This document shows, piece by piece, positions 3,499-45,870 of a stretch of DNA of 64,000 bases (within the stretch, counting starts at the first letter, position 1; each line of letters begins with the position of its first letter). The notes under the pieces are model-generated. The model saw nothing but the letters and a program-made list of their open reading frames with translations, made no database searches and was not told the DNA's origin. Position numbers and translations under genes: made by a program. Location of the stretch: the NCBI GenBank assembly GCA_038087875.1, contig JAXLNO010006177.1, positions 186,001 through 250,000 on the forward strand, written 5' to 3'. This DNA comes from Malacoraja senta (taxonomy: Eukaryota).

Positions 3499-4497
3499 AG
3501 TCTACCCAATATTATTTCTCGCCTAATGCAAATTTCTTTCTGTTCCTCTGCCTCCCGAGATCCTCCATCCTCTAGTACACCTGGGAGATTGTGTGTGTCT
3601 TCCTTAGTGAAGACAGAACCAAAGTACCTGTTCAACTCTTCTGCCATTTCCTTGTTCCCCACAATAATTTCACCCGTGTGCCTTCAAGGGACCCACATTT
3701 GACTTTGCTACTCTTTTTCCCTTAACATATCTAAAGAAGCTTTTACTGTCCTTCATTAATTCCTGGCCAGCTTCCCTTCGTACTTCATCTTCTCAGCACG
3801 TATAGCCCGTTTTGATTCCTTCTCTTGCCCTATGAAAGTTTCCCAATCCTCTGGCTTCCCATTACTCTTTGTGTTATACATCTTTTCTGTGTTATACATC
3901 TTTTCTTTTAGTTTTATTCCATCCCTAACTTCCCTTGTGAGCCACGTCTCTTACTCCCCTTAGAATCTTTCTTCCTCTTTGGAATGAAATGATCCTGCAT
4001 CTTTTGGATTATGCCCAGAAATTCCTGCCATTGCTTTTCCACCGTCATTCCTGCTTGGATCACTTTCCAGTCGAGCTTGGCCAGCTCCTCTCTCATGCCT
4101 TCATAGTCCACTGTGTTCAACTGCATCACTGCCACTTCTGATTTAACGTTCTCCTTCTCAAATTGCACATTAAAACTAATCATATTATGATCACTACCTC
4201 CAAGCAGTTCCTTTACCTCGAGTTATCTTATCATATCTGGTTCATTGGACAAAACTAAATCCAGAATTGCCTTTTTTCTGGTCGGCTCCATTACAAGCTG
4301 CTCCAAGAATCCATCTCGGAGACATTCTACAAATTCACTTTCTTGGGGTCCTGAACCAACCTGATTTTCCCAGTCTACCTGCATATTGAAATCCCCCATC
4401 ACCACAGTGGCATTACCTTTGCTACATGCCAGTTTTAACTCCTGCTGCAACTTACACCCTACATCCGGACTACTATTTGGGGGTCTGTAGATAACAC

Positions 4498-5276
4498 GTT
4501 ATCTACACCTCTGCACATCGATGGAGCTGATGTGGAAAGGGTCAACAGCGTGAAGTTCCTAGGACTCCACCTGTCAGATGACCTGACGTCCACGACCAAC
4601 ACCACAGCACTGGTCAAGAGAGCCCAGCAGCGACTACACCCTCTCCGAAGACTACGTAAAGCAGGTCTCCCCACTACACACCTACGAACTTTTTATATGG
4701 GGACAATCGAGAGCACATTAACCTACAGCATCACTTCCTGGTTCGGGAGCTGCAAGCTGTACGAACGGCACCAACTAGACAGGATTGTGAAGACCGCCAG
4801 CAGGATTATTGGTGCTCCACTCCCTTTCCTGCTGGACATATACAGGAAGAGATGTATCAGCAGAGCCATCTCCATCATCAAAGACCCCTACCACCCATCG
4901 CATCACATATTCTCCATCCTGCCATCTGGGAAGAGGTACCGGAGCATTAGGTGGAAAACCAGCAGGATGCTCCTCAGCTTCTTCCCGCAGGTTATAAGAC
5001 TGATAAACGGACTTTGCCCCCTGCCAAAGTATCGTGCACCAACCACCAACCTGGACACACTGCAGCAGAGCCACTGTCGTGCCGCTGCCGATCGGAACGC
5101 CTGTTGATGTTTAGTAGAGTAGAGTGTTAATTTGTTCATGATATATGTATTTTTACTTCTATTTATATTTTACTGCACACTGAAATGGACACTGGTTGAG
5201 GAACGTTTTTTTGTTTCCTCTGGGTATGCGAATACTCAGGAAATGACAATAAAGATATACAATACAATACAATACA
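4498..5276 (+). mobile_element. 5'-truncated Rex1/Babar-like LINE nested in the CR1
   Basis: ORF VKFLGLHLSDDL...AQQRLHPLRRLRK...HPSHHIFSILPSGKRYRSI; (TACAA)n tail; 7-bp TSD ataacac (4491-4497 and 5277-5283). Confidence 0.8.
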
Positions 5277-7689
5277 ATAACACCAATTAACGTATTCTTG
5301 CCTTTACAATTCCTCAACTCAATCCACAGTGACTCTACCTCGTCAGTCCCTATGTCTTCCCTCGCAAGGGACTGAATTCCATCCCTCACCAGCAGAGCTA
5401 CCCTCCCTCCTCTACCCACTTGCCGGTCCTTTCTATAGGATGTATAACCCTGAATATTAAGTTCCCAGGCCCGATCCTCCTGCAGCCACGTCTCAGTAAT
5501 CCCCACAATGTCAAATCTACCAACCTCTAACTGAACCTCAAGCTCATCTACTTTACTTCTTATACTTCGCGCATTCATATACAATACTTGTAATTCCTTA
5601 CGCATCTCACCTTTCACATCGATCCCTGTTACACTTGGCCATACTCTCCTATCCCTTTGTGAGCTTCCTTTCCCGTTAATTCTGGGGTCATTAACCATCC
5701 CTTTACTCTCTTTCCCTTTAAATCCATCCTCGACTATCCCATTTGACACCCCACCCCCCTTATTCAGATAAAAACCACCTGTGTAGCAGTGGCAAACCTG
5801 CCTGCCAGAATGCTGGTCCCCCACCTGTTAAGATGCAATCCGTCCCCTTTGTACAGTTCCCCCTTACCCCAAAACAGATCACAGTGATCTAACAATCTAA
5901 ATCCCTGCCCCCTACACCAGTTCCCCAGCCACACATTCAGGTCCCGTATCTCCCTGTTCCTGCTCTCGCCAGCACGAAGAACTGGAAGCAAACCGGAGAT
6001 AACAACCCTGGAGGTCCTGCTTTTCAGCATTTTTCCGAGCTCTCTAAAGTCACGCTGCAGAATATTCATCCCATTCTTTCGGACATCGTTTGTGCCGACA
6101 TGCACTACCACTTCCAGCTGTTCACCTTCGCCCTTGAGGATTTTCTGCACTCTGTCCGTGACATCCTGGATCCTGGCAACAGGAAGGCAGCACACCATCC
6201 TCGAATCCCGTCTGTTCCTGCAGAAACCCCTGTCCGTACCTCTCACAATGGAGTCTCCAACTACAATGGCGTACAGGTGTCAGAAGGTATGGTGAGAAGC
6301 CAAGAGTTAGGAGTGTGAGATAGATCAGCCATGGTGGAATGGTGGAGTAGACTTGATGGGCCGAATGGCCTCATTCTACTCAAATTCCATATGAACTTAT
6401 GACAGGTGGTTAACAAAGTAACTCCAGTCTTACAATCTCACTGTGTAGGAAGGAACTGCAGATGCTGGTTTAAACCGAAGATAGACACAAAATGCTGGAG
6501 TAACTCAGCGGGACAAGCCCCTTCTTCAGACTGAGAGTGAGTGATGAGGGAGACACAGAGATAAGGGATCGCACTACCTGTGCCCCGTGTTCAAGAGACA
6601 AGAAAGAGGAAGACAGTGCAGATCAGTAGGTGACTCAGGAGCTGGTGCAGGAGGTGGGCGCTTCAGACATAGAGTCATACAGCATGGAAACAGGCCCTCT
6701 GGCCCAACTTGTCCATGCCCATGCACCATACACTCGTACTACCAGCCTGTGTTTGACCCATATCCCTGTAAACCTGTCTTATCCATGTACCTGTACACAT
6801 GAATGTTCAATGTTATCATAGACTTTGTCTTTGGAACGGATGTGTTACAATGCTGGGAGATATATTCTACACTCTGTATCTTGCACTTTGCTCCATCTGT
6901 TGTACTCCAGTTTGATTGTGTTTATTTTCAGTATATCCTTATCTGATTATATAGCATGCAAAACAAAGCTTGACACTACCTCGGTACATGGGCAGAGCAT
7001 TCAATAGGAAAGGTGCATTCATTCTGATGGGATTCTGTAGGTTTCCCAAAAGCCAGCTGAGGAACAGCAGAGGAACTGTGACAAGTCTCAGGTGATGCTT
7101 TGCTATGTCATGAGCTCAGTAAATGATAGAGTCGTTGAGAGTGTTGCACAATAGAGTACAGTTGTACGACAGGAAGGTGACATCAGATATACATGTACTG
7201 AGATGGACAAGGGCTGATTAGGGATAGTCAGCACAGATTTGTACGTGGGAGATCGTGTCTCACCAACCTGATTGAGCTTCTTGAAGATGTGACCAAAAAC
7301 GTTGATGATGACAGAGCTGTCGACGTTGTATATGTGGATTGGAGCAAAGGTATTTAACAAGCATCCACATGGTAGGTAAGGTAAGATTGCACTTACCTTC
7401 CACATGCTCTGGAAGGTAAGATTGCAAGGGATCCAAGGAGAGATAGCTGAATGGATAGAAACTTGGCTTCATGGAAGGAAGCAGAGGGTGATGGTGGAAG
7501 GTTGTTTTTCAGACGGGAGGCCTGTGACTAGTGGTGAGAACGTACAAGGCATGAGCAGCAAATTTGCTGCTGAGACTTATTGATTAGTAGGATTGGATGT
7601 TACAATCCCTAAGGTTTTTCACTACAATTGACATTACTGGGGATGACCACTAGGTGATTTTGCTACCAATCAGACACATCTTCAGTTGT

Positions 7690-8330
7690 GTACCTCAACA
7701 GCACTGGGTGTTCACAAGACATCCTCAGTCGAGGCAGGCCCACCGCAGGGTGATCAGCCCTGGGCGTGTGTCTTATGGTTAGCCTCTAGATGGTCACGTG
7801 GCAGCCCAGACAGCATCTTTTCTCTTCAGCCACAGCCAGTGACTGCTCCATTCGGCTTTTTTCCTTCCATCTTCCTGTCTACTGCTGACTGTGGCTGGTT
7901 GGGCTCTGGACTCGTGTCCGTTGGTGGGACAGTACTTGGTTGAGCTTCACCTGGGGTGCTGATACCCTGTGGACTGTGGTGGTTAACCTGCCACTGGGCT
8001 TCACTCGACTGATTTGACCTACCTCTTAGAAGGTAATGGTCAATGTGAGGCCCCACACCAAGCTCTCCCAGGCACTTTTCACTGCTCTGGTGGATCTTGT
8101 GACCCTTCTCTGATGTTATCTTTTCCCAGCCACAGATGCAGCTTCATAGCTTATGTCCTGCCAGGGCTGCTGCTCTGTCAATTACTGTGCTAGTTGTCTT
8201 ATTCATAGTCGATTCCTTCCGTAGCAATCTAAGGGTGGATCCAAAACGCTGATTAGCGATGGATCTTGCAGGCATGAGGAGCTAGCCCATGCCAGCCCCG
8301 GTGGGGTCTATTCCCTCCGGTCAGCAGTGG
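7690..8330 (-). mobile_element. Possible 5' fragment of a NeSL/HERO-like (restriction-endonuclease) non-LTR element
   Basis: Minus frame reads CICGWEKITSEKGHKIHQSSEKC near 8070-8140, resembling the N-terminal CxCG...GLKIHQ...C zinc finger; otherwise decayed. Confidence 0.4.
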
Positions 8331-14905: not shown

Positions 14906-16415
14906 GGATGTTCAGTCACTCTACATCCACATCCCCCACCAGGAGCATCTTAAAGATCTCCGTGTCTTCCTCGACCACAGAACCAACCAATCCCCATCTA
15001 CTGATACTCTCCTCCGCCTCCTCCAACTTTTCCTTTGACTCCTCCCATTTCCTCCAAATCCAAGGCGTAGCTATGGGCAGACGCATGGACCCCAGCTATG
15101 CCTGCCTCATTGTAGACTATGTCAAACAATCCTGGTTCGAGACGTACCGTGGCCCTATCCCCGAACTACCTCCGCTACATTGATGACTGCATTGGTGCTA
15201 CTTCCTGCACTCATGCACAACTCACTGACTTCATCCATTTCACCACTAACTTCCATCCGGCACTCAAATTCACCTGGACCATTTCCGACATCTCCTTCCC
15301 GTTTCTAGACTTCACTATCTCCATCGCCGTTAACAAACTACTGACCGACATCTACTATAAACCCACTGACTCCCATGGCTATCAGGACTACACTTCTTCC
15401 CACCCTGCTTCCTGTAAGGCCTCTATCCCCAATTCCTCCTTCTATGCCGCATCTGCAACCAGGATGAGGTGAGGGCATGGGAGATGTCCTCATTCTTTAG
15501 GGAACAGGGATCCCCTCTTCGACTATAGATGAGGCTCTCACCAGGGTCTCTTCTATACCCCGTAACTCGGCTCTCACTCCCCATCCCCGCACTCGTAACA
15601 AGGACAGAGTCCCCCTTGTCCTCACCTTCCACCCTACCAGCCGTCACATACAACAGATAATCTTGACATTTTCGCCACCTCCAACGGGATTCCATCACTT
15701 GCCACATCTTCCCATCTCCTCCCCTTTCGGTTTTCGGCAGAGACCGCTCCCTCCGTAACTCCCTGGTCAATTCGTCCCTTTCCACCCAAACCACCCCCTC
15801 ACCTGGCACTTTCCCTTGCAACCGCAGGAAATGCTACACTTGTCACTTTACCTCCCCACTTGACTCCATCCAAGGACCTAAGCAGTTTTTCCAGGTGCGG
15901 CAGTGGTTCAACTGCACCTCCTCCAACCTCATCTATTGCATCCGCTGCTCTAGGTGTCAGCTGCTCTACATCCGTGAGACCAAGGGTAGGATTGGCGATC
16001 GCTTCGCCCAACACCTCTGCTCAGTTCGCAATAACCAATCTGATCTCCCGGTGGCTCAGCACTTCAACTTAACCTCCCATTCCGAATCCGACCTTTCTAT
16101 CCTGGGCCTCCTTCATGGCCAGAGTGAGTTCAACCGCAAATTGGAGGAGCAGCACCTCATATTTTGCTGGGGTAGTTTACACCCCAGCGGTATGGATATT
16201 GACCTCCAATTTCAGGAAGTCCTTGCTTTATCTCTCTTTCCCCTCCGCTTCCTAGCTCTCCCACAGCCCACTGTCTCCGCCTCTTTCTTTCTTCTTCCCG
16301 TCCCCCCCCCCACCCCCACATCAGTCTGAAGAAGGGTCTCGACCCGAAACGTCACCTATTACTTCGCTCCATAGATGCTGCCTCACCTGCTGAGTTTCTC
16401 CAACATTTTTGTCCA
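14905..16415 (+). mobile_element. 5'-truncated Penelope-like element (RT plus GIY-YIG endonuclease)
   Basis: MDVQSLY, QIQGVAMG, LRYIDDC, FPFLD, IYYKPTDSH (PLE RT); NLIYCIRCSRCQLLYIRET...RF.QH (GIY-YIG); frameshifted; ends in a hammerhead-bearing terminal repeat. Confidence 0.9.
16322..16356 (+). ncRNA. Minimal type I hammerhead ribozyme motif
   Basis: CTGAAGA-A-GGGTC(TC)GACCC-GAAA-CG-TC: intact core, helix II and the palindromic ACGT helix III typical of PLE hammerheads; helix I is only 2 bp. Confidence 0.7.
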
Positions 16416-17778
16416 CAACAATTTGATTAATATTTTTGGTGATATAAGTTGGTCATTCTAATCATATTAATAATCCTCAAAGCAATACTCTCTTACTTTC
16501 ACATCCTTTATAATGTCCCAAAGTATCCAGCAAAGTGCCTTACATAAATTGGGCATGAACCACACTTCCTTCAAACAGTCACTGTCAGTTTACTGGGGAT
16601 TCAATGTCAGATTCCAATGTCTGACAAAATTCCAGAAGTTAACAACAATTATTATGGAAAGTAATTGTGATTAATGTTAAAAGAAAAAATAGTTCATGAG
16701 CGAACACAAATCTGTGCTCTTGAACCAAAGCCTGCATTGTTCCACCATTGCCCTGGCTACCAATGCACCGTGCCATCACTACAATGCTCCTAATGAAATA
16801 TGGTTACCCTGAAGAAATAGATTGGTTACTTTGGACATACAAAGGTAATCATCATCACGGAGCTCCCGTTGTTCTGTGTAAATTATTCTCTCCTTATTTC
16901 GTAAATTATAACTTATTTCTTCTGTCTCTTTGGTTGTTTCCTCGCTTGTAGATCCCGAAGTCTTTCTGGTGGAGACAACTGGAAAAAGAAAGCCAAAAAT
17001 AAACCTAATTACATTGTTTCAAGTCAGATAAGTGGCTGCCCTGTAAAATATGGAAGTTAGTTACATAATATGCAACATGTTCTATGAATTGAATTTAAAT
17101 GACATGGTGGTAGTCAAATGGTCATTATCTCATATCAATTATTTACTGTAATGCACAGGACTCACTCATTTTGAGTTTCACTTTTACAAACAGAATTACC
17201 TGTTGCTCTTTTGATTCTTTTCACCAACACTGTGCCTTCCTTTGTTTCTTCAGTGGCTCCTCCCAAATCTCTTTTGTCCTCCCCTGTATATGACGTGAGC
17301 TGTGATGAGCCATTTTGTTGAAACTGTGATTCATAAGGACACAAATAAATTGTTTCTACTTCTTCTCGATTATTTCTTCCATCGCATTATTAACTGAGAT
17401 ACTCAACTCAACTAGTAATAGAAGCAGTAACTGCCTAGTGTGCAATATTTCATTGAGCTCTCACCTTTCATACTCTACTCTGAAATGAAGTTTGATATTG
17501 TCAGCAAATGTGGGAAAATGTGGGAACAATTGATCACTTTCAACAATATAAATATATTTGTGAATGTTAGCACCTGACTCCACAGCAGTGATGATGAATT
17601 TTCTAAACAGCAGTAATTTCTGTCATGTAGAAAATAAAATGCTAATGTAGAACCACTGTTAATTCATAAAAGCGTATTCTCACTTCTCCTTTATGCTGGG
17701 AATAATTTCTGTTCTTACCTTTATGACAAGATTTCTTTTGGTATTCTTGCCATTTTCATTCTTAAAAGGAGGCCTAAA

Positions 17779-18040
17779 GGGGGAGGGGCTGAGGCCGCCG
17801 CGTCGCTGAGGGGGAGGGGCTGGGGCTGACGCGTCGCTGAGGGGGAGGGGCTGAGGCCGTCGCGTCGCTGAGGGGGAGGGGCTGAGGCCGACGCGTCGAT
17901 GAGGGGAATGGGCTGAGGCCGTCGCGTCGCTGAGGGGGAGGGGCTGAGGCCGCCGCGTCGCTGAGGGGGAGGGGCTGAGGCCGCCGCGTCGCTGAGGGGG
18001 AGGGGCTGAGGCCGACGCGTCGCTGAGGGGGAGGGGCGGG
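17779..18040. repeat. 31-bp CpG-rich minisatellite, about 8.5 copies
   Basis: Unit gggggaggggctgaggccgccgcgtcgctga with period 31. Confidence 0.95.
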
Positions 18041-18395
18041 GCTTGGGCTCGACGTCAACGTCAGCGCGCATGCAGATATTGCAATGGAGTTGCTGCTGTT
18101 ACAGTGGAGCATCTGTTGCAGGGTACCTGGTGTTGCAGCGGTGCAGAGATTGCAGTGGAGCAGGTTCCTGCATTGAAGCTCCTGCAGTGAAGCAGCTTCT
18201 GTTGTGGAGCAGCCACTGCCACAGTGGAGCTCTTGCTGCTACCACAGTGGAGCATCTCCTGCAGCTGCAGGGAAAGTTCAAGCCTCCACCATCTCCTCAG
18301 GCAGCGTGTCCCAGATTGCAACCACCCTCTGGGTGAGTTTAATCTCATCCACGTCCGGTTTATTGTTCTGTTAGTATAGGCTGGTCTGCAGTTCC

Positions 18396-18930
18396 TTGTT
18401 CCATCATCTTATTCTAATTGGTGACTCCAAATACTACGTTTCCTCATCTGTTCTTGCCCCATCAGAGATATTATCCCCTTTGTTCCACCAATCCACCACA
18501 ACCTCTCTCTACAAGTGAAAAACAACTTGTTTTTGTTGCTGTTTCCTACTCTGGTGAAGGGTCTCTGATCTGAAACTGAACTGTTTCTTTCTCCACAAAT
18601 GCTGTCGAACCTGCTGAATGTTTTTTGAATTTTCTTCCATTTTTATTTCAGATTTTCAGCATGTGCGGTTCTTTGCTTTACACGTTCATTTTGATGTTGT
18701 GACCTGTCAACAATAAATCAAAGGAGATCAGATACGTGGTGTCGTAATCTACTGGAATTCAAGTAACTAGTAAGTGTTTCAATGGGAAGGTCCTGCCTAC
18801 TCGGGATGGGACTCCATTTTAGTTTAGTTTAGAGATACAGCACGGAAACAGGCCCTTCAGCCCACCGAGTCCACGCCGACCAGCGATCCCCACACACAAA
18901 CTATCCCACACACACTAGGGACAATTTACA
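18396..18930 (+). repeat. About 535-bp local direct duplicate of 20293-20828
   Basis: ccatcatcttattc...gggacaatttacact occurs at both positions with scattered substitutions. Confidence 0.9.
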
Positions 18931-20829
18931 CTGAAACCAAGTAGACCATGGGTCGAGGTGCTTTTTCGTTTCATTTCGTGACCCAAATTATGTATTTACC
19001 TGTATTTGTAACAAATTATGTAAACAAATTATATAAATCATACCTGCAAGTGGGCAAGAACAAAACCTGCACATATTTTTAAAATATCAGAAAAACCTTA
19101 AAAGGAGGCCTAAAGATTCTGAATCCTTGGGGAAAAAAAGTGACACGTCAGCTCTGCTTTGGAGAAGCACAGACTGGATCTCAATAGTTTGGAAATGTTG
19201 GATATATCTAAGGTAATTGAGTTTAAAATAAGCAACATATTATAAAAGTAGAAATTAGGAAAAGTAAATTTGCACTTAATGAATAACACATTTGGAAAAA
19301 TATATTCAATTTATCAAATATTCCACCAAGTTAAGAATATAATCTCCCTTGCAACACATTTCATAGGCTAACGGCCAAATTGATTAGAATCAATTATATT
19401 TGAAAAACTGCATTTAATATTTCAAACAGATTTAAATTATGTTGTAGATTTTTTGTCAGAAGTTTAGGTGTCCAATCCTCATCTGAATCGCTAGATTCAT
19501 AAACTTGGGTTTGACGCCTTCTGCTCCAATTTGTCCTGAATTCTGGCTTGGGTACATTTAATCCTGTGAAAAATAAAACATGCTCATCATCTGTTATGGC
19601 CAACTTCAGGTATTTATCTTCATTGAACTCACCAGTGCTAAATATCTGTGGAAACATCACTTTGCAATGTTATCGTTATTACTATTTCCTCCAGAGTATT
19701 CATGCTATTATTCAATTGATCATGTCTACTTGACAAAGACAGCAATCAACCTAAAAATTATTTTTCAGAGTTAAAGAATAATCAACCAGCATGAAGAATA
19801 TGACGGATGAGTATGTGTCTATTTCCAGGTCAGAAATCGCAATAACCAATCTTTCAGTTTCACACATCTGTTTGGTGAGTGAAATAGATCAGAATCCTTC
19901 TTTCCATTCCTCCAGGTTTAAAGTAATGGCTCATTCTTGCTGCCTGTACTGGCAGTGACACTTTGTGCCATGGTTGGGTAAATGGATTGAATAATGAACA
20001 ACCAGGACCATCCACCTCTTCATCAATGGGAACATTGACCTTTGTCCAATCTCTGATTTCAGGACTGTGACTAGTTGAAACATTAAAAAGCGTAACTGGT
20101 CCCAATGTCTCTGGGTTTGTGTTGTCCATGGTCACCATCTTCTGAATGACATCAAGCTTTGGTATTGATTGTAAAGTTAGTCCAATTTGAGATCACTGAT
20201 GGGAATTTTTTGATATTGGTGAGGAAGCTCACCAGGAGAAGTGTTTTACTGAACTAGACTAAGGGGGGTAAGCTGAAGGAGCATAATTACAGTCCCATCA
20301 TCTTATTCAAATTGCTGACTCCAAATACTACGTTTCCACATCTATTCTTGCCCCATCAGAGATATTCTCCCCTTTGTTCCACCAATGCACCACGACTCTC
20401 TCTACAACTGAAAAACCACTTGTTTTTGTTGCTCTTTCCTACTCTGGTGAAGGTTCTCTGATCTGAAACTGAACGGTTTCTTTCACCACAAATGTTGTCT
20501 AACCTGCTGAATGTTTTTTGAATTTTCTTCCATTTTTCTTTCAGATTTTCAGCATCTGCGGTTCTTTGCTTTACACGTTCATTTTGATGTTGTGACCTGC
20601 CAACAACGAATCAAAGGAGATCAGATACGTGGTGTCGTAATCTACTGGGATTCAAGTAACTAGTAAGTGTTTCATTGGGAAGGTTCTGCCTACTCGGGAT
20701 GGGACTCCATTTTAATTTAGTTTAGAAATACAGCACGGAAACAGGCCCTTCAGCCCACCGAGTCCACGCCGACCAGCGATCCCTGCACACTAACACTATC
20801 CCACACACACTTGGGACAATTTACACTCA

Positions 20830-21045
20830 TACCTCACTAAACTTCACCTCACACCTAAGCCTCAACTCACTAAACTGCACCTCGACTAAACTTCCTCAAC
20901 AAAACATCGCACCTCGACTAAATCCTCGCCTCGACTAAACTTTACCTCAACTAAACCCTCAATCGTCTCGACCAAACTTCACCTCAGATAAATTTCACAC
21001 CTCACTAAACCTTGCTTCGATTAAACCCCTCGCTTCAACTAAAAC
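20830..21045. repeat. Degenerate short tandem repeat, about 16-20 bp unit
   Basis: Recurrent cctcgactaaac/cctcactaaac. Confidence 0.7.
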
Positions 21046-21724
21046 TGTCACCCAGGGAATCCGAATCTCATGGACATTAAACATCTTGTGGGGTTGGGGT
21101 GGGATAGGGTAGAGGTGAGGGGTGGGGGAGCAGGCAGGCAAGGAGAGGGGTTATGGAGGGAGGAAGGGAGTGATTGAGGGAGGAGGAGAGGGGAAAGAAG
21201 AGGGAAGGTGAAGATACCTGGTGTGGGCCGAGCCTCGGGGCTGCAGCCGGGCCCGGGCGCTGGGGAGCGGATATAGACACGGACTGGGCCCTGAACGCGG
21301 CTCCGGGCCCTGGGCTGGGGTTCGAGCCGGTGTGGGGTCTTGGGGCTGCTGCTCCGGGCCCACAGGGAGGGAGAGGAGCGGGACCTGGGGCAAGGACTAG
21401 CCAGCAGCCTCGTCTTCTTCCTCCCCCAGACCGCAGCCTCTCCCTCCCATGGCTCCAGACCTGTCAACATGTGACACATGTATGGTCGTGAATAGTCGTC
21501 CAAAGAGTCCTACCTTTTCCTGGTCGCCGCTGGATTTTCAACGTGTTGACGTTGAACTATGACGGGTGCTGGCAGTCGCTGAAAAATATTGCGTACGTGG
21601 GACAGGCCCTTTAGACTGTTGAGGAAGCCTTGTTTATGGGCTCACAGTCGGGTGGGGGCTGTAAAGCTCCACTTGGTTCTAGTTGGATTGTCTGGTCTCT
21701 GTATTGTCTTAGATAGGCGCAAAA

Positions 21725-31860: not shown

Positions 31861-32684
31861 AAGAAGGGTCCCGACCCAAAACGTCACCCATCCTTTTTCA
31901 GACAGAGATGCTGCCTGACCCGCTGAGTTACTCCAGAACTTTGTGTCTATCTTAGGTTTTTGACATCCTTCCTTTAGTTTAGTTTAGAGATACAGCATGG
32001 AAACAGGCCCTTTGGCCCACCAAGTCGGCATCGATCAGCGATCCCTGCACACTAACAGTTGAGCCGTGGGCGGATCAGTTGCATGGTGCTTTTGTGAACA
32101 GCAGCACAAACATTGGGCCACGTGGCCCTTTGAACATTGTAAACCTTGAGAGAGAAGTTTGCGTTGTTGACAACTTGCTGTTCTTCCCACCCCCCAGGTT
32201 TGGCGTACTCTGAATCGGTCTCTCCCCTTGCCAAGCTGTGGGGCTGGATCTCGCTGCTGTCTCCAGGTACCTGCATTACTAATCTTCCCTCTTCTGTGGT
32301 CCATGGCCCCAAAACTCTGCTCCAGTCAAACAGTGCCCTGCTGATGCTGGACCCATTGGTGAGGGATAGCCCGCTGCTCCCTCCTTAAACTCCCAGGGAT
32401 TGCACAAGGCCTGGTCCCCAGTGCTCTGTTGTTCGTGCAGCCTAGGCCCACAGTCAGTGCGGGAGGAAGCCGCCTTCCAGCTTGGTACTCCAGTGTGTTC
32501 CCTGAGCCTGACTGGGTCACTCACTGAGATGAGTGGTGAGTTCCCCAGAGGACCATAGAGTCAAGAGACGACTGACTGTCAATGCTCGGTTACTCGATCC
32601 CGACTGAAGTCATGTTGTAACACCTAAGGGAGGCCTGGTTTGTGTTCTAGGGTCACTGGGGTGATGAAAGAATAGGATCTCCTT

Positions 32685-37530: not shown

Positions 37531-38504
37531 GCCACCATCGCCTCAGTCCACCCACCTGCCTTCCTCCCTCCGGCCCCAACCCCCATCCCTGCCGTGTGTT
37601 CACCATCCCCCCTGACCCCCCCTCTCAGATACCGAACGGTCTGTCCTCAGCAGAGGCCACACCTTTGTCCCCCTCCATCCCCACCGCAATGAGTTCCGCG
37701 CCCGCCTTGATTTGGAGCTCTTCTTCCCTCGCCTCCGCCTCACACCGTTCTTCCACGGGAAGGAGTCCTCGCCCCCATTGATGATCCCTTTTCCCGTCTC
37801 CAACGGACCCCATCCTCTTGGACCCCCCCCCCCCCATGGCCATTGGGATAGTCGAGGACGGAGTTGAAGGGAAAGAGAGTAAAGGGAGGGTTAATGATCC
37901 CTGAATTGATCCTCTCCACATCCACTCTATCCAAGCTTTTCACTATTTGGTATGATTCAATGAGGTCCCCCCTTATTCTTCTAAAATCCAGCGAGTACAG
38001 GTCCACTGCCATCAAATGCTCATCATATGTTAATCCATTAATTCCTGGGATCATTCTTGTACACCTCCTCTGGACCCTCTATAGAGCCAGCACATGCTTC
38101 CTCAGATATGGTGCCCAAAATTGCTCACAATGCTCCAAATGTGGCTTGACTGGTGCCTTATAGAACCTCAGCATCCCTGCTTGACAGTGAGAAAATGCAA
38201 TTGATATCTTTCATATTAGTTAACCATGGATTTTCTTGACCACAGTTGACAGCCCCTAATGGGATTGCATCTCTTTCACACATCTCTATAGAGCATAGCG
38301 TTAAGCTTCGCAGGGCAAAATTTACACGAGTTGTGCAGGTCAAGTGTTTTTTTGCAGAGAGAGCTTGATACCTAGAATGCGCTACCAGGAGTGGTGGTAG
38401 AGGAGGACATGATAATGGTGCTTAAGAAGGTTTTGGACAGGCTTGTGGTTATGCAGGGAATACAAGGATATGGATCACATGCAGGCAGTGGAGATGAGTT
38501 TTGG

Positions 38505-38790
38505 TTTAGTTTAGAGATAGAGTATGGAAACAGGAACTTTGGGCCACTGAGTCCGCACTGACCAGCAATTGCCCATTCACTATTTCTGTCCAACAAGCTA
38601 GGGACAATTTACAGAAGCCAATTAACCTACAAACCTGCACGTCTTTTGTATTTGGGAGGAAACCGGAGCCCTCAGAGAAAACCCACAGGGTGACAGAGGG
38701 AATGTGCAAACTCCGTCCAGACAGCAGTCAGAATCGAACCCGGGTCTATAATGTTGTAAGACAGCCACTCTATCACTGTGCCTCTGTGTT
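38505..38790 (-). mobile_element. tRNA-derived SINE
   Basis: Same family as 22167-22455, reverse orientation. Confidence 0.7.
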
Positions 38791-44943: not shown

Positions 44944-45589
44944 GTAAGATGGAAAAATTGTGATGCAATGTTGCTAGTAAAGGTATTGGGCTTGAAGAAA
45001 TGATCGATCTCAAGTAGGATAAGGCAGCAGCTACACCTGAAATGCCTCGACAGTCACCACTTTCAACTAGCCTTTGTGCTGTTGTTAAATGTTTCTGATA
45101 ATCAGATATTTAAAAATTGTGAATTCAGTGTAAAAAAATGTTATACATTATGGATTCACTGCCCCAAATCCTAGAAATATCAATGAGTCATTAAAAAGTA
45201 CAGCATGCAAGTAGTCCTTTCGGCGTACCGTGTCCATGCCAACCACCAACCACCTGTTCTCATGAATTCTATCTCATTGCACCTTCTCATCCAGTCACCC
45301 ACCCACTAGGGGCAATTTACAGTGGCCAATTAAACTATAAACTGACACATCTTAGGATGTGTGAGGAAACCGGAGCCCCGGAGGGATCCAATGTGGTTAC
45401 ACGGAGAACGTGCAAACTCCACATAGATGGCACTCGAGGTCAAAATTGAACCCGGGTCTGTGTCGCTGTGAGGCAGCAGCTCTATGAGTTGTGACACTGT
45501 GCTGCTCTGTTGGGGGCTCGCACTGTTCATGATCCAAGTCAGCTATGAGGCAGATTGGTTGCAGTTTAACGTTTACTAGTTTTGTTTAG

Positions 45590-45870
45590 TTTAATTTAGA
45601 GATACAGTAACGAAACAGGCCCTTCGGCCCACTGTGTCTGAGCTGACCAGCGATCCCCGCACAATAACACTATCCTATACATGCATACCAAGCCAATTAA
45701 CCTACATACCTGTACGTCTTTGGAGTGTGGGAGGAAACCTTAGATCTCGGAGAAAACCCACGCGGTCACGGGGAGAACGTACAAACTTTGTACAGACAGC
45801 ATCAGTAGTCGGGATCGAACCCGGGTCTCCGGTGCTGCAAGCACTGTAAGGCAGCAACTCTACCGCTGCA
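45590..45870 (-). mobile_element. tRNA-derived SINE
   Basis: Well-preserved copy; B-box gttcgatccc on the minus strand at about 45810-45822. Confidence 0.75.

Follow-up and report, generated by a model that had tools for sequence, protein, structure and literature searches.

We analysed a 64,000-nt stretch of the genome of the skate Malacoraja senta (GenBank assembly GCA_038087875.1, contig JAXLNO010006177.1, positions 186,001–250,000 of the forward strand; hereafter the window, with coordinates counted from its first nucleotide). The minus strand of the window carries a PRDM9/PRDM7-like gene copy with an exon split in two by a 1.3-kb insertion flanked by a 19-bp duplication. On the minus strand the insert begins with GT and the downstream copy of the duplication ends with AG, at positions suitable for exact removal of the inserted sequence, and the original prediction made from these features was a recent intron-generating insertion of the introner type.

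The host gene was identified by an exhaustive profile search with the open reading frame (ORF) at 19397–19660, followed by tblastn. It matches the proteins P0001, P0004, P0010 and P0011, named PRDM7-like or PRDM9-like by their sources; the matches to such proteins came from Amblyraja radiata, Rhinoraja longicauda, Narcine, Mustelus and Mobula, and KRAB, PR/SET and C2H2 domains were found in the matched PRDM9-like proteins with Pfam. A weak Pfam match of the same ORF to CUSTOS (E-value 0.059) was rejected; profile search and tblastn identified the matching segment as the acidic SDSDEDW stretch of PRDM9-like proteins.

Exons of the host were mapped by tblastn of family proteins against the window, followed by DNA alignment and motif look-up. 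Exon 2 (19441–19563; here and below all host exons are on the minus strand) encodes GLNVPKPEF...SDSDEDWTPKLLTKN.. and has AT as its donor dinucleotide (19440–19439). Exon 3 consists of two separated parts: the first (19097–19125), preceded by the acceptor CCCCAAG, encodes ..RFRIFRPPFK, and the second (17719–17760), followed by the donor GTAAGA, encodes NENGKNTKRNLVIK. Exon 4 (17200–17299, with a start at 17283 if an alternative acceptor is used) encodes ..TGEDKRDLGGATEETKEGTVLVKRIKRAT, and exon 5 (16841–16978) encodes ..YNLRNKERIIYTEQRELRDDDYL; the GTATGT donor of exon 5 is intact, as it is in the related loci L001 and L002 introduced below. In our own judgement exon 5 encodes an SSXRD-like motif. 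Exon 3 encodes the linker between this motif and the KRAB-related part of the protein. Reading frames agree across exons 2–5, which align to P0001, P0004, P0010, P0011 and P0023–P0026.

As the original prediction had claimed, the 19-mer CTTAAAAGGAGGCCTAAAG is present in two exact copies, at 17761–17779 and 19097–19115 (19 of 19 positions identical), and it is unique to this pair: no third match was found in the window with up to two mismatches allowed, and 100 shuffles produced zero matches (chance expectation 0). The copy at 19097–19115, upstream in gene orientation, encodes a part of ..IFRPPFK. Between the two copies lies the insert itself (17780–19096, 1317 bp). In minus-strand reading the upstream copy has ...CCTTTTAAG at its end; the insert starts next, from 19096 downward, with GTTTTTCTG and its GT, and terminates with ..CAGCCCCTCCCC; the downstream copy ends again ...CCTTTTAAG at 17761, where its last two bases are the AG of the proposed acceptor, and continues into AATGAAAATGG. 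Exon 3 ends ...ATAAAG/GTAAGA, the final G being at 17719. Excision from GT(19096) to AG(17761) takes away the insert with one copy of the 19-mer and gives exactly the pre-insertion sequence, so that the predicted restoration of a continuous exon down to AAG/gtaaga at 17719 was borne out by the sequence. Register 19 is the sole GT..AG register at the insertion, and the insertion point is situated exactly between a K and an N codon of exon 3 (RFRIFRPPFK/NENGKNTKRNLVIK).

Six related loci were used for comparison: the locus of P0001 in A. radiata (L001; CM021381.1) and five paralogues in R. longicauda (L002–L006; CM130205.1), which are the loci of P0004, P0023, P0027, P0003 and P0029. In each of the six loci exon 3 is uninterrupted and contains a single copy of the 19-mer. 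The flanks of the window insertion abut in all of them with an overlap equal to one 19-mer, or to 16 bp in L001 owing to a 3-bp deletion; in L004 both the 19-mer and the flank are identical to those of the window. The annotated proteins P0001, P0004 and P0023 read uninterrupted through the insertion site. Among the closest public loci, flank identity is ∼95% for A. radiata and ∼89% for R. longicauda. The insertion is absent from every related locus sampled; the uninterrupted empty site, which the original prediction had proposed to look for in paralogues and relatives, was found in 6/6 loci, and the interrupted sequence, predicted to be an exon, is coding exon 3 of a PRDM9-like copy, contiguous in relatives. 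We conclude that the insertion is genuine, that it duplicated 19 bp of its target site and that the exon it entered is a real coding exon.

A homologue search with residues 1–160 of P0004 returned a family of skate, ray and shark proteins with none flagged as encoded in the window, so none of the gene models of this genome extends over the insertion site; a search with P0001 returned only P0001 itself. On one 10.9-Mb chromosome of R. longicauda (CM130205.1, 0.85–5.6 Mb) at least eight genes are annotated as PRDM9-like, PRDM7-like or derived zinc-finger genes. Some of the PRDM9-like models in this species skip exons 3 and 4 or are without a SET domain, and none of them has a KRAB match. This cluster is a large expansion of the PRDM9-like family in skates.

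The host copy shows signs of decay. At the end of exon 2 the window reads ..AAC/ATAATT (A at 19440) versus ..AAC/GTAATT in both L001 and L002; the change from GT to AT is a CpG-type transition (CpG to CpA), and the AT donor alone is expected to prevent exon 2 from being joined normally to exon 3. In L001 the KRAB exon (∼5960–6066) precedes exon 2 by 2.6 kb. The 44 kb upstream of the host exons yielded no KRAB exon, the KRAB exon of L001 remained unmatched in the 64-kb window in DNA and protein searches, and the whole L001 interval 3500–8116 had no counterpart anywhere in the window by the same two kinds of search. Zinc-knuckle, PR/SET and C2H2 zinc-finger exons were searched for by tblastn with eight family proteins, and none was detected in the 64-kb window, including the 16.8 kb downstream; in the R. 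longicauda paralogues exon 6 follows 4–6 kb behind exon 5. The missing downstream exons are a supportive, though not conclusive, sign of a dead copy. Public sequencing runs show 10–22 contig variants per site in this region, indicating that the locus is one member of a multi-copy family. The most fitting description of the host is a PRDM9-like pseudogene fragment with exons 2–5 only within the window, non-functional given this reduced exon set and the GT to AT change at the exon 2 donor.

Duplicates and pseudogenes of PRDM9 and PRDM7 are known in other animals, e.g. primate PRDM7 and the partial vertebrate PRDM9 orthologues (PMC5519329). They share with the skate loci the KRAB/SSXRD/PR-SET/zinc-finger family membership, recent duplications and partial copies, and exons 2–5 of the window align to annotated skate PRDM9-like and PRDM7-like proteins; unlike them, the window copy has kept only the linker and SSXRD-like exons and is one of many skate copies. 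No skates were sampled in the 2017 survey of PRDM9 (PMC5519329).

The inserted sequence has the organization of an intron-containing transcription unit, with its sense strand on the plus strand of the window and therefore antisense to the host. At its 5′-end there is a GC-rich tandem array (17778–18037; 8.4 copies of a 31-bp unit) with homology to L001 2752–2808, where roughly a single unit of the array is present in A. radiata. Next come a repeat-rich exon-1-like part (18060–18331) with GCAGTGGAGC-type repeats, ending CTCTGG/GTGAGT, a retained intron of 327 bp (18332–18658) with GT..AG boundaries, ending TTTATTTCAG, and an exon-2-like part (18659–18817) with AATAAA at 18712–18717. These are followed by a 5′ fragment of a repeat resembling a short interspersed nuclear element (SINE; 18818–18938) and by an AT-rich tail (18939–19096) ending ..ATCAGAAAAAC / ..CAGAAAAAC. 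Only positions 18939–18976 of the tail are common to L001, where another repeat cuts the copy short, and no other match to the tail was found in the 64-kb window. The insert ends carry no terminal inverted repeats (TIRs), and a search of 17600–21200 against Rfam gave no family at E-values up to 0.1.

Two relatives of the captured unit were found. The first is a partial copy within the window (20292–20833, plus strand), situated just upstream of the gene fragment and made of a part of the intron, exon 2 and the SINE fragment; it is 94% identical to insert positions 18398–18938. The second is in L001, where positions 2040–1321 are 96% identical to insert positions 18260–18976; this unit precedes the A. 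radiata gene copy by ∼6 kb and is oriented opposite to it. In L001 the unit goes on in the 5′ direction and reaches GC-rich sequence with a TATA-like motif; the insert has its 5′-end aligned ∼100 bp downstream of this sequence.

For comparison with reads we used four public runs (X1, X2, X14 and X22), which yield short contigs that mostly represent the SINE or paralogous copies. In one X22 contig position 18331 is followed directly by 18659, with GT..AG boundaries on the plus strand and 77 letters on the shorter side; the run is from another organism and may be DNA. This joint indicates that there is a spliced form of the captured unit, either an RNA or a processed copy, and that the sense strand of the unit is the plus strand of the window. 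The GC-rich, TATA-containing, promoter-like sequence at L001 2600–3000 separates the captured unit from the PRDM7-like KRAB exon, these two being oriented away from each other in direction; the sequence could be a bidirectional promoter of PRDM9-like copies. We infer that the captured unit is a divergent promoter-associated transcript of PRDM9-like loci.

What could have brought this sequence into exon 3? The best overall explanation, which we consider probable, is an antisense insertion of the retroposition type that disrupted exon 3 of a dead PRDM9-like fragment, the GT..AG boundaries being incidental. The mode of arrival was most likely retroposition by the machinery of a long interspersed nuclear element (LINE), as suggested by four features: a long duplication, ends without inverted repeats, a nick site rich in A/T and a 5′-end close to the presumed transcription start. 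The 19-bp duplication falls into the range of 7–20 bp typical of LINE-mediated retroposition. The bottom-strand nick that we deduced, CCTCCTTTTAAG/AATGAAAA (TTTTAAG/AATG on the primed strand), is T/A-rich.

The sequence comparisons show that a 1317-bp copy of a transcription unit of the neighbouring type was inserted antisense between two codons of exon 3, with 19 bp of the target duplicated. According to the retroposition scenario, an L1-like enzyme acting in trans would have used an unspliced RNA expressed in the germline as the template for target-primed reverse transcription, and the insert would be an unspliced and slightly 5′-truncated copy of a promoter-associated RNA. The GT..AG pair would be a by-product of the insert happening to start with GT on the gene strand and the target happening to end with AG; the element would disrupt an exon already in decay and would play no role of an intron.

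Among the closest known systems is retroposition by LINE-1 in trans, which produces retrocopies, SVA-like composites and exonic L1 and Alu insertions such as those in NF1 (PMC3219598). Shared features are a long duplication of variable length (19 bp here), ends that are not inverted repeats, a target rich in A/T, a start close to the RNA 5′-end and the disrupted exon. The differences are that poly(A) is absent here, that the intron is kept, so that the insert is not a processed copy, and that the nick is shifted by 3 nt from TTTT/AA. A DNA transposon of the TIR class would not fit, as the insert ends have no inverted repeat pair. We know of no TIR superfamily with a target-site duplication as long as 19 bp.

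Several observations weigh against the retroposition of an RNA into a dead gene copy. The nick is 3 nt off the canonical L1 motif TTTT/AA; at the 3′-end of the insert a poly(A) tail is missing, AAAAA being interrupted by a C, and the 30 nt next to this end contain no canonical poly(A) signal, which leaves retroposition a likely rather than a proven mode of arrival. The retained intron suits a DNA-level copy as well as an unspliced RNA. As to the state of the host, SET and zinc-finger exons could lie beyond the window, and one paralogue does have a 12-kb intron. Also, the contig spanning the flank-to-insert junction (see below) is 93% identical to the window, and other copies or species may share the insertion, which would make it older than the perfect duplication suggests.

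A serious rival, to which we assign a clearly smaller yet substantial probability, is an insertion at the DNA level: a fragment of a nearby or paralogous unit would have been taken up while a staggered double-strand break was being repaired, or through template switching, and fill-in of 19-nt overhangs would have made the duplication. Related units do exist close by, 1.2 kb away in the window (20292–20833) and ∼6 kb upstream of the gene in the A. radiata locus, and capture of DNA would account for the kept intron, the inclusion of promoter-proximal sequence and the absence of a poly(A) tail. On the other hand, a clean 19-bp duplication with neither filler nor deletion is generally typical of endonuclease-initiated retroposition rather than of end joining. 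The adjacent copy is no recent donor, given its identity of only 94%, and the start of the insert falls within the portion of the unit presumed to be transcribed rather than at an arbitrary point.

A lesser rival, which we regard as rather unlikely, is that the insert belongs to an undescribed family of composite, non-autonomous SVA-like retrotransposons, i.e. is mobile by itself, with a GC-rich variable number tandem repeat (VNTR), further repeats, a SINE fragment and a tail. VNTR-like arrays and a SINE fragment are indeed present, with array lengths varying among copies, and the duplication is long. In run X1 the summed word depth of the insert core (18260–18780) is several-fold above that of its flanks, while the 3′ tail, in a retroposon expected to exceed all other parts in abundance, shows no greater depth than the flanks. 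This profile is unlike that of a 3′-anchored retroposon family, with depth in both cases not to be read as copy number. Further arguments against such a family are that a duplication and defined ends are seen in just one of the three copies, that the A. radiata copy runs upstream into promoter-like DNA rather than into flank, and that there is no copy near the five R. longicauda paralogues.

The possibility that the insert acts as a nascent intron appears very improbable to us. In this case the host copy would be transcribed, AAG/GTTTTT (19096) and ..CCTTTTAAG ending at 17761 would be used as splice sites, and the insert would be removed together with one copy of the repeat; spliced in this way from PRDM9-like transcripts, it would be a vertebrate intron gain in which an antisense promoter-associated RNA was retroposed into an exon belonging to the same gene family, an outcome that we hold to be just as improbable. 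Several properties are those expected of an intron: the GT and the AG stand in exact register, the AG comes after a long tract rich in pyrimidines, the insertion is in a true coding exon with empty sites in relatives, and its position between codons means that exact removal keeps the frame. The splice sites themselves are poor. The donor AAG/GTTTTT, described as weak in the original prediction and rightly so, fits the consensus only on the exon side and at the GT, with mismatches at +3, +4 and +5. These three positions pair with U1, and such donor mismatches, as well as A at acceptor position −3, are rare in the vertebrate consensus. The AAG acceptor has this rare A, and a better TAG acceptor is available 13 nt upstream in the same repeat (CCCTTTAG/GCC).

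The context of the insertion argues against splicing too. The transcript would need the exon 2 donor, which is destroyed in this very copy, and the KRAB, SET and zinc-finger exons were not found in the 64-kb window. Moreover, GT and AG can come into register by chance: in a simulation with 200,000 random 19-bp targets and 1317-bp inserts drawn from this window, an exact GT..AG register on a given strand turned up at least once in 7.9% of the insertions, which makes the observed register unremarkable. Among the public runs that match the locus none is on record as RNA, and in the short, repeat-swamped contigs of the four runs no joint skips the insert among the 15 listed (165 further joints are unlisted).

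A search for other insertions with the same ends, also proposed in the original prediction, did not find any in the window and the six related loci: the other copies (20292–20833 in the window and 1321–2808 in L001) are upstream or intergenic and lack such boundaries. Neither the window copy nor the L001 copy forms an intron, and no copy is present near the five R. longicauda paralogues.

Comparison with introners points in the same direction. The skate insertion resembles an introner in that it interrupts a coding exon, with the duplicated target giving the AG and the element giving the GT, and in that exact removal would restore the mRNA; such an arrangement is among those known for introners (PMC9860276, PMC12130899). 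However, introners are found as many near-identical spliced copies, mostly of DNA transposons with 3–9 bp duplications, in protists, fungi and a few invertebrates, whereas here we have a single 1.3-kb insertion in a broken gene copy of a vertebrate, known from DNA alone, with a 19-bp duplication, weak splice sites and sister copies that are not introns. No introner-type gain was reported in vertebrates by surveys of 3325 and 8716 genomes (PMC9860276; PMC12130899). Taken with the truncated host, the AT donor of exon 2, the chance-level register and the non-intron sister copies, the proposal of a recent intron-generating insertion is not supported.

The least probable explanation, to which we give scarcely any weight, is an assembly artefact with the insert and second 19-mer produced by a mis-join: a multi-copy locus with so many contig variants per site in public runs does invite mis-assembly, but a perfect signature, with the target duplicated once and the flanks collinear with six empty sites, is unlike collapses or chimeras, and the left junction is spanned by an independent contig. 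This contig, of 114 nt, comes from the independent public run X2 and covers 17732–17845 across the exon/insert junction with eight mismatches; its existence argues against a simple mis-join. The eight mismatches could reflect a diverged second copy, an insertion common to related species or differences within the tandem array.

Several other features of the window were observed. Just upstream of exon 2, a 92-aa minus-strand ORF without a Pfam match (19863–20138) is situated within a block 95.5% identical to L001 8116–8584; it may be intronic. The SINE-like repeat starts with GTTTAGTTTAGAGATACAGCACGGAAACAGG; besides the fragment in the insert, it is present in ∼10 places of the window (e.g. 31973–32056, 45585–45681 and 38499–38624), and its word depth is ∼100–1000 times that of neighbouring bins in all four public runs, in several species. 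A tandem array of CCTCACTAAAC-like units of ∼20–25 bp accompanies PRDM9-like loci (window 20826–21043, L001 3000–3500 and L002 16–582) and in the window directly abuts the shortened SINE fragment. The window is rich in debris of LINE and Penelope-like elements. ORFs at 15119–16329 (plus strand) have a YIDD reverse-transcriptase motif and a weak GIY-YIG match (E-value 0.049), with a Penelope-like look; similar sequence is present at L002 17902–20242.

The retroposition-type insertion described here is an event of a known kind, the disruption of a pseudogene exon, and not a demonstrated new intron. As a clean textbook case it combines a perfect 19-bp duplication with six empty sites in relatives. 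A GT–AG pair supplied by the duplication is expected in about one of 13 such insertions, so the signature alone is no proof of intron gain. As it stands, the observation matters little, being one further disruptive insertion in one further decaying copy of an expanded skate PRDM9-like family. Since a recent intron gain by insertion is, to our knowledge, undocumented in vertebrates, the insertion would become important only if its splicing were proven. Still, if the captured sequence is a divergent, spliced, promoter-associated transcript, it would hint at germline expression of PRDM9-like clusters and at the LINE machinery acting on cellular RNAs in skates.

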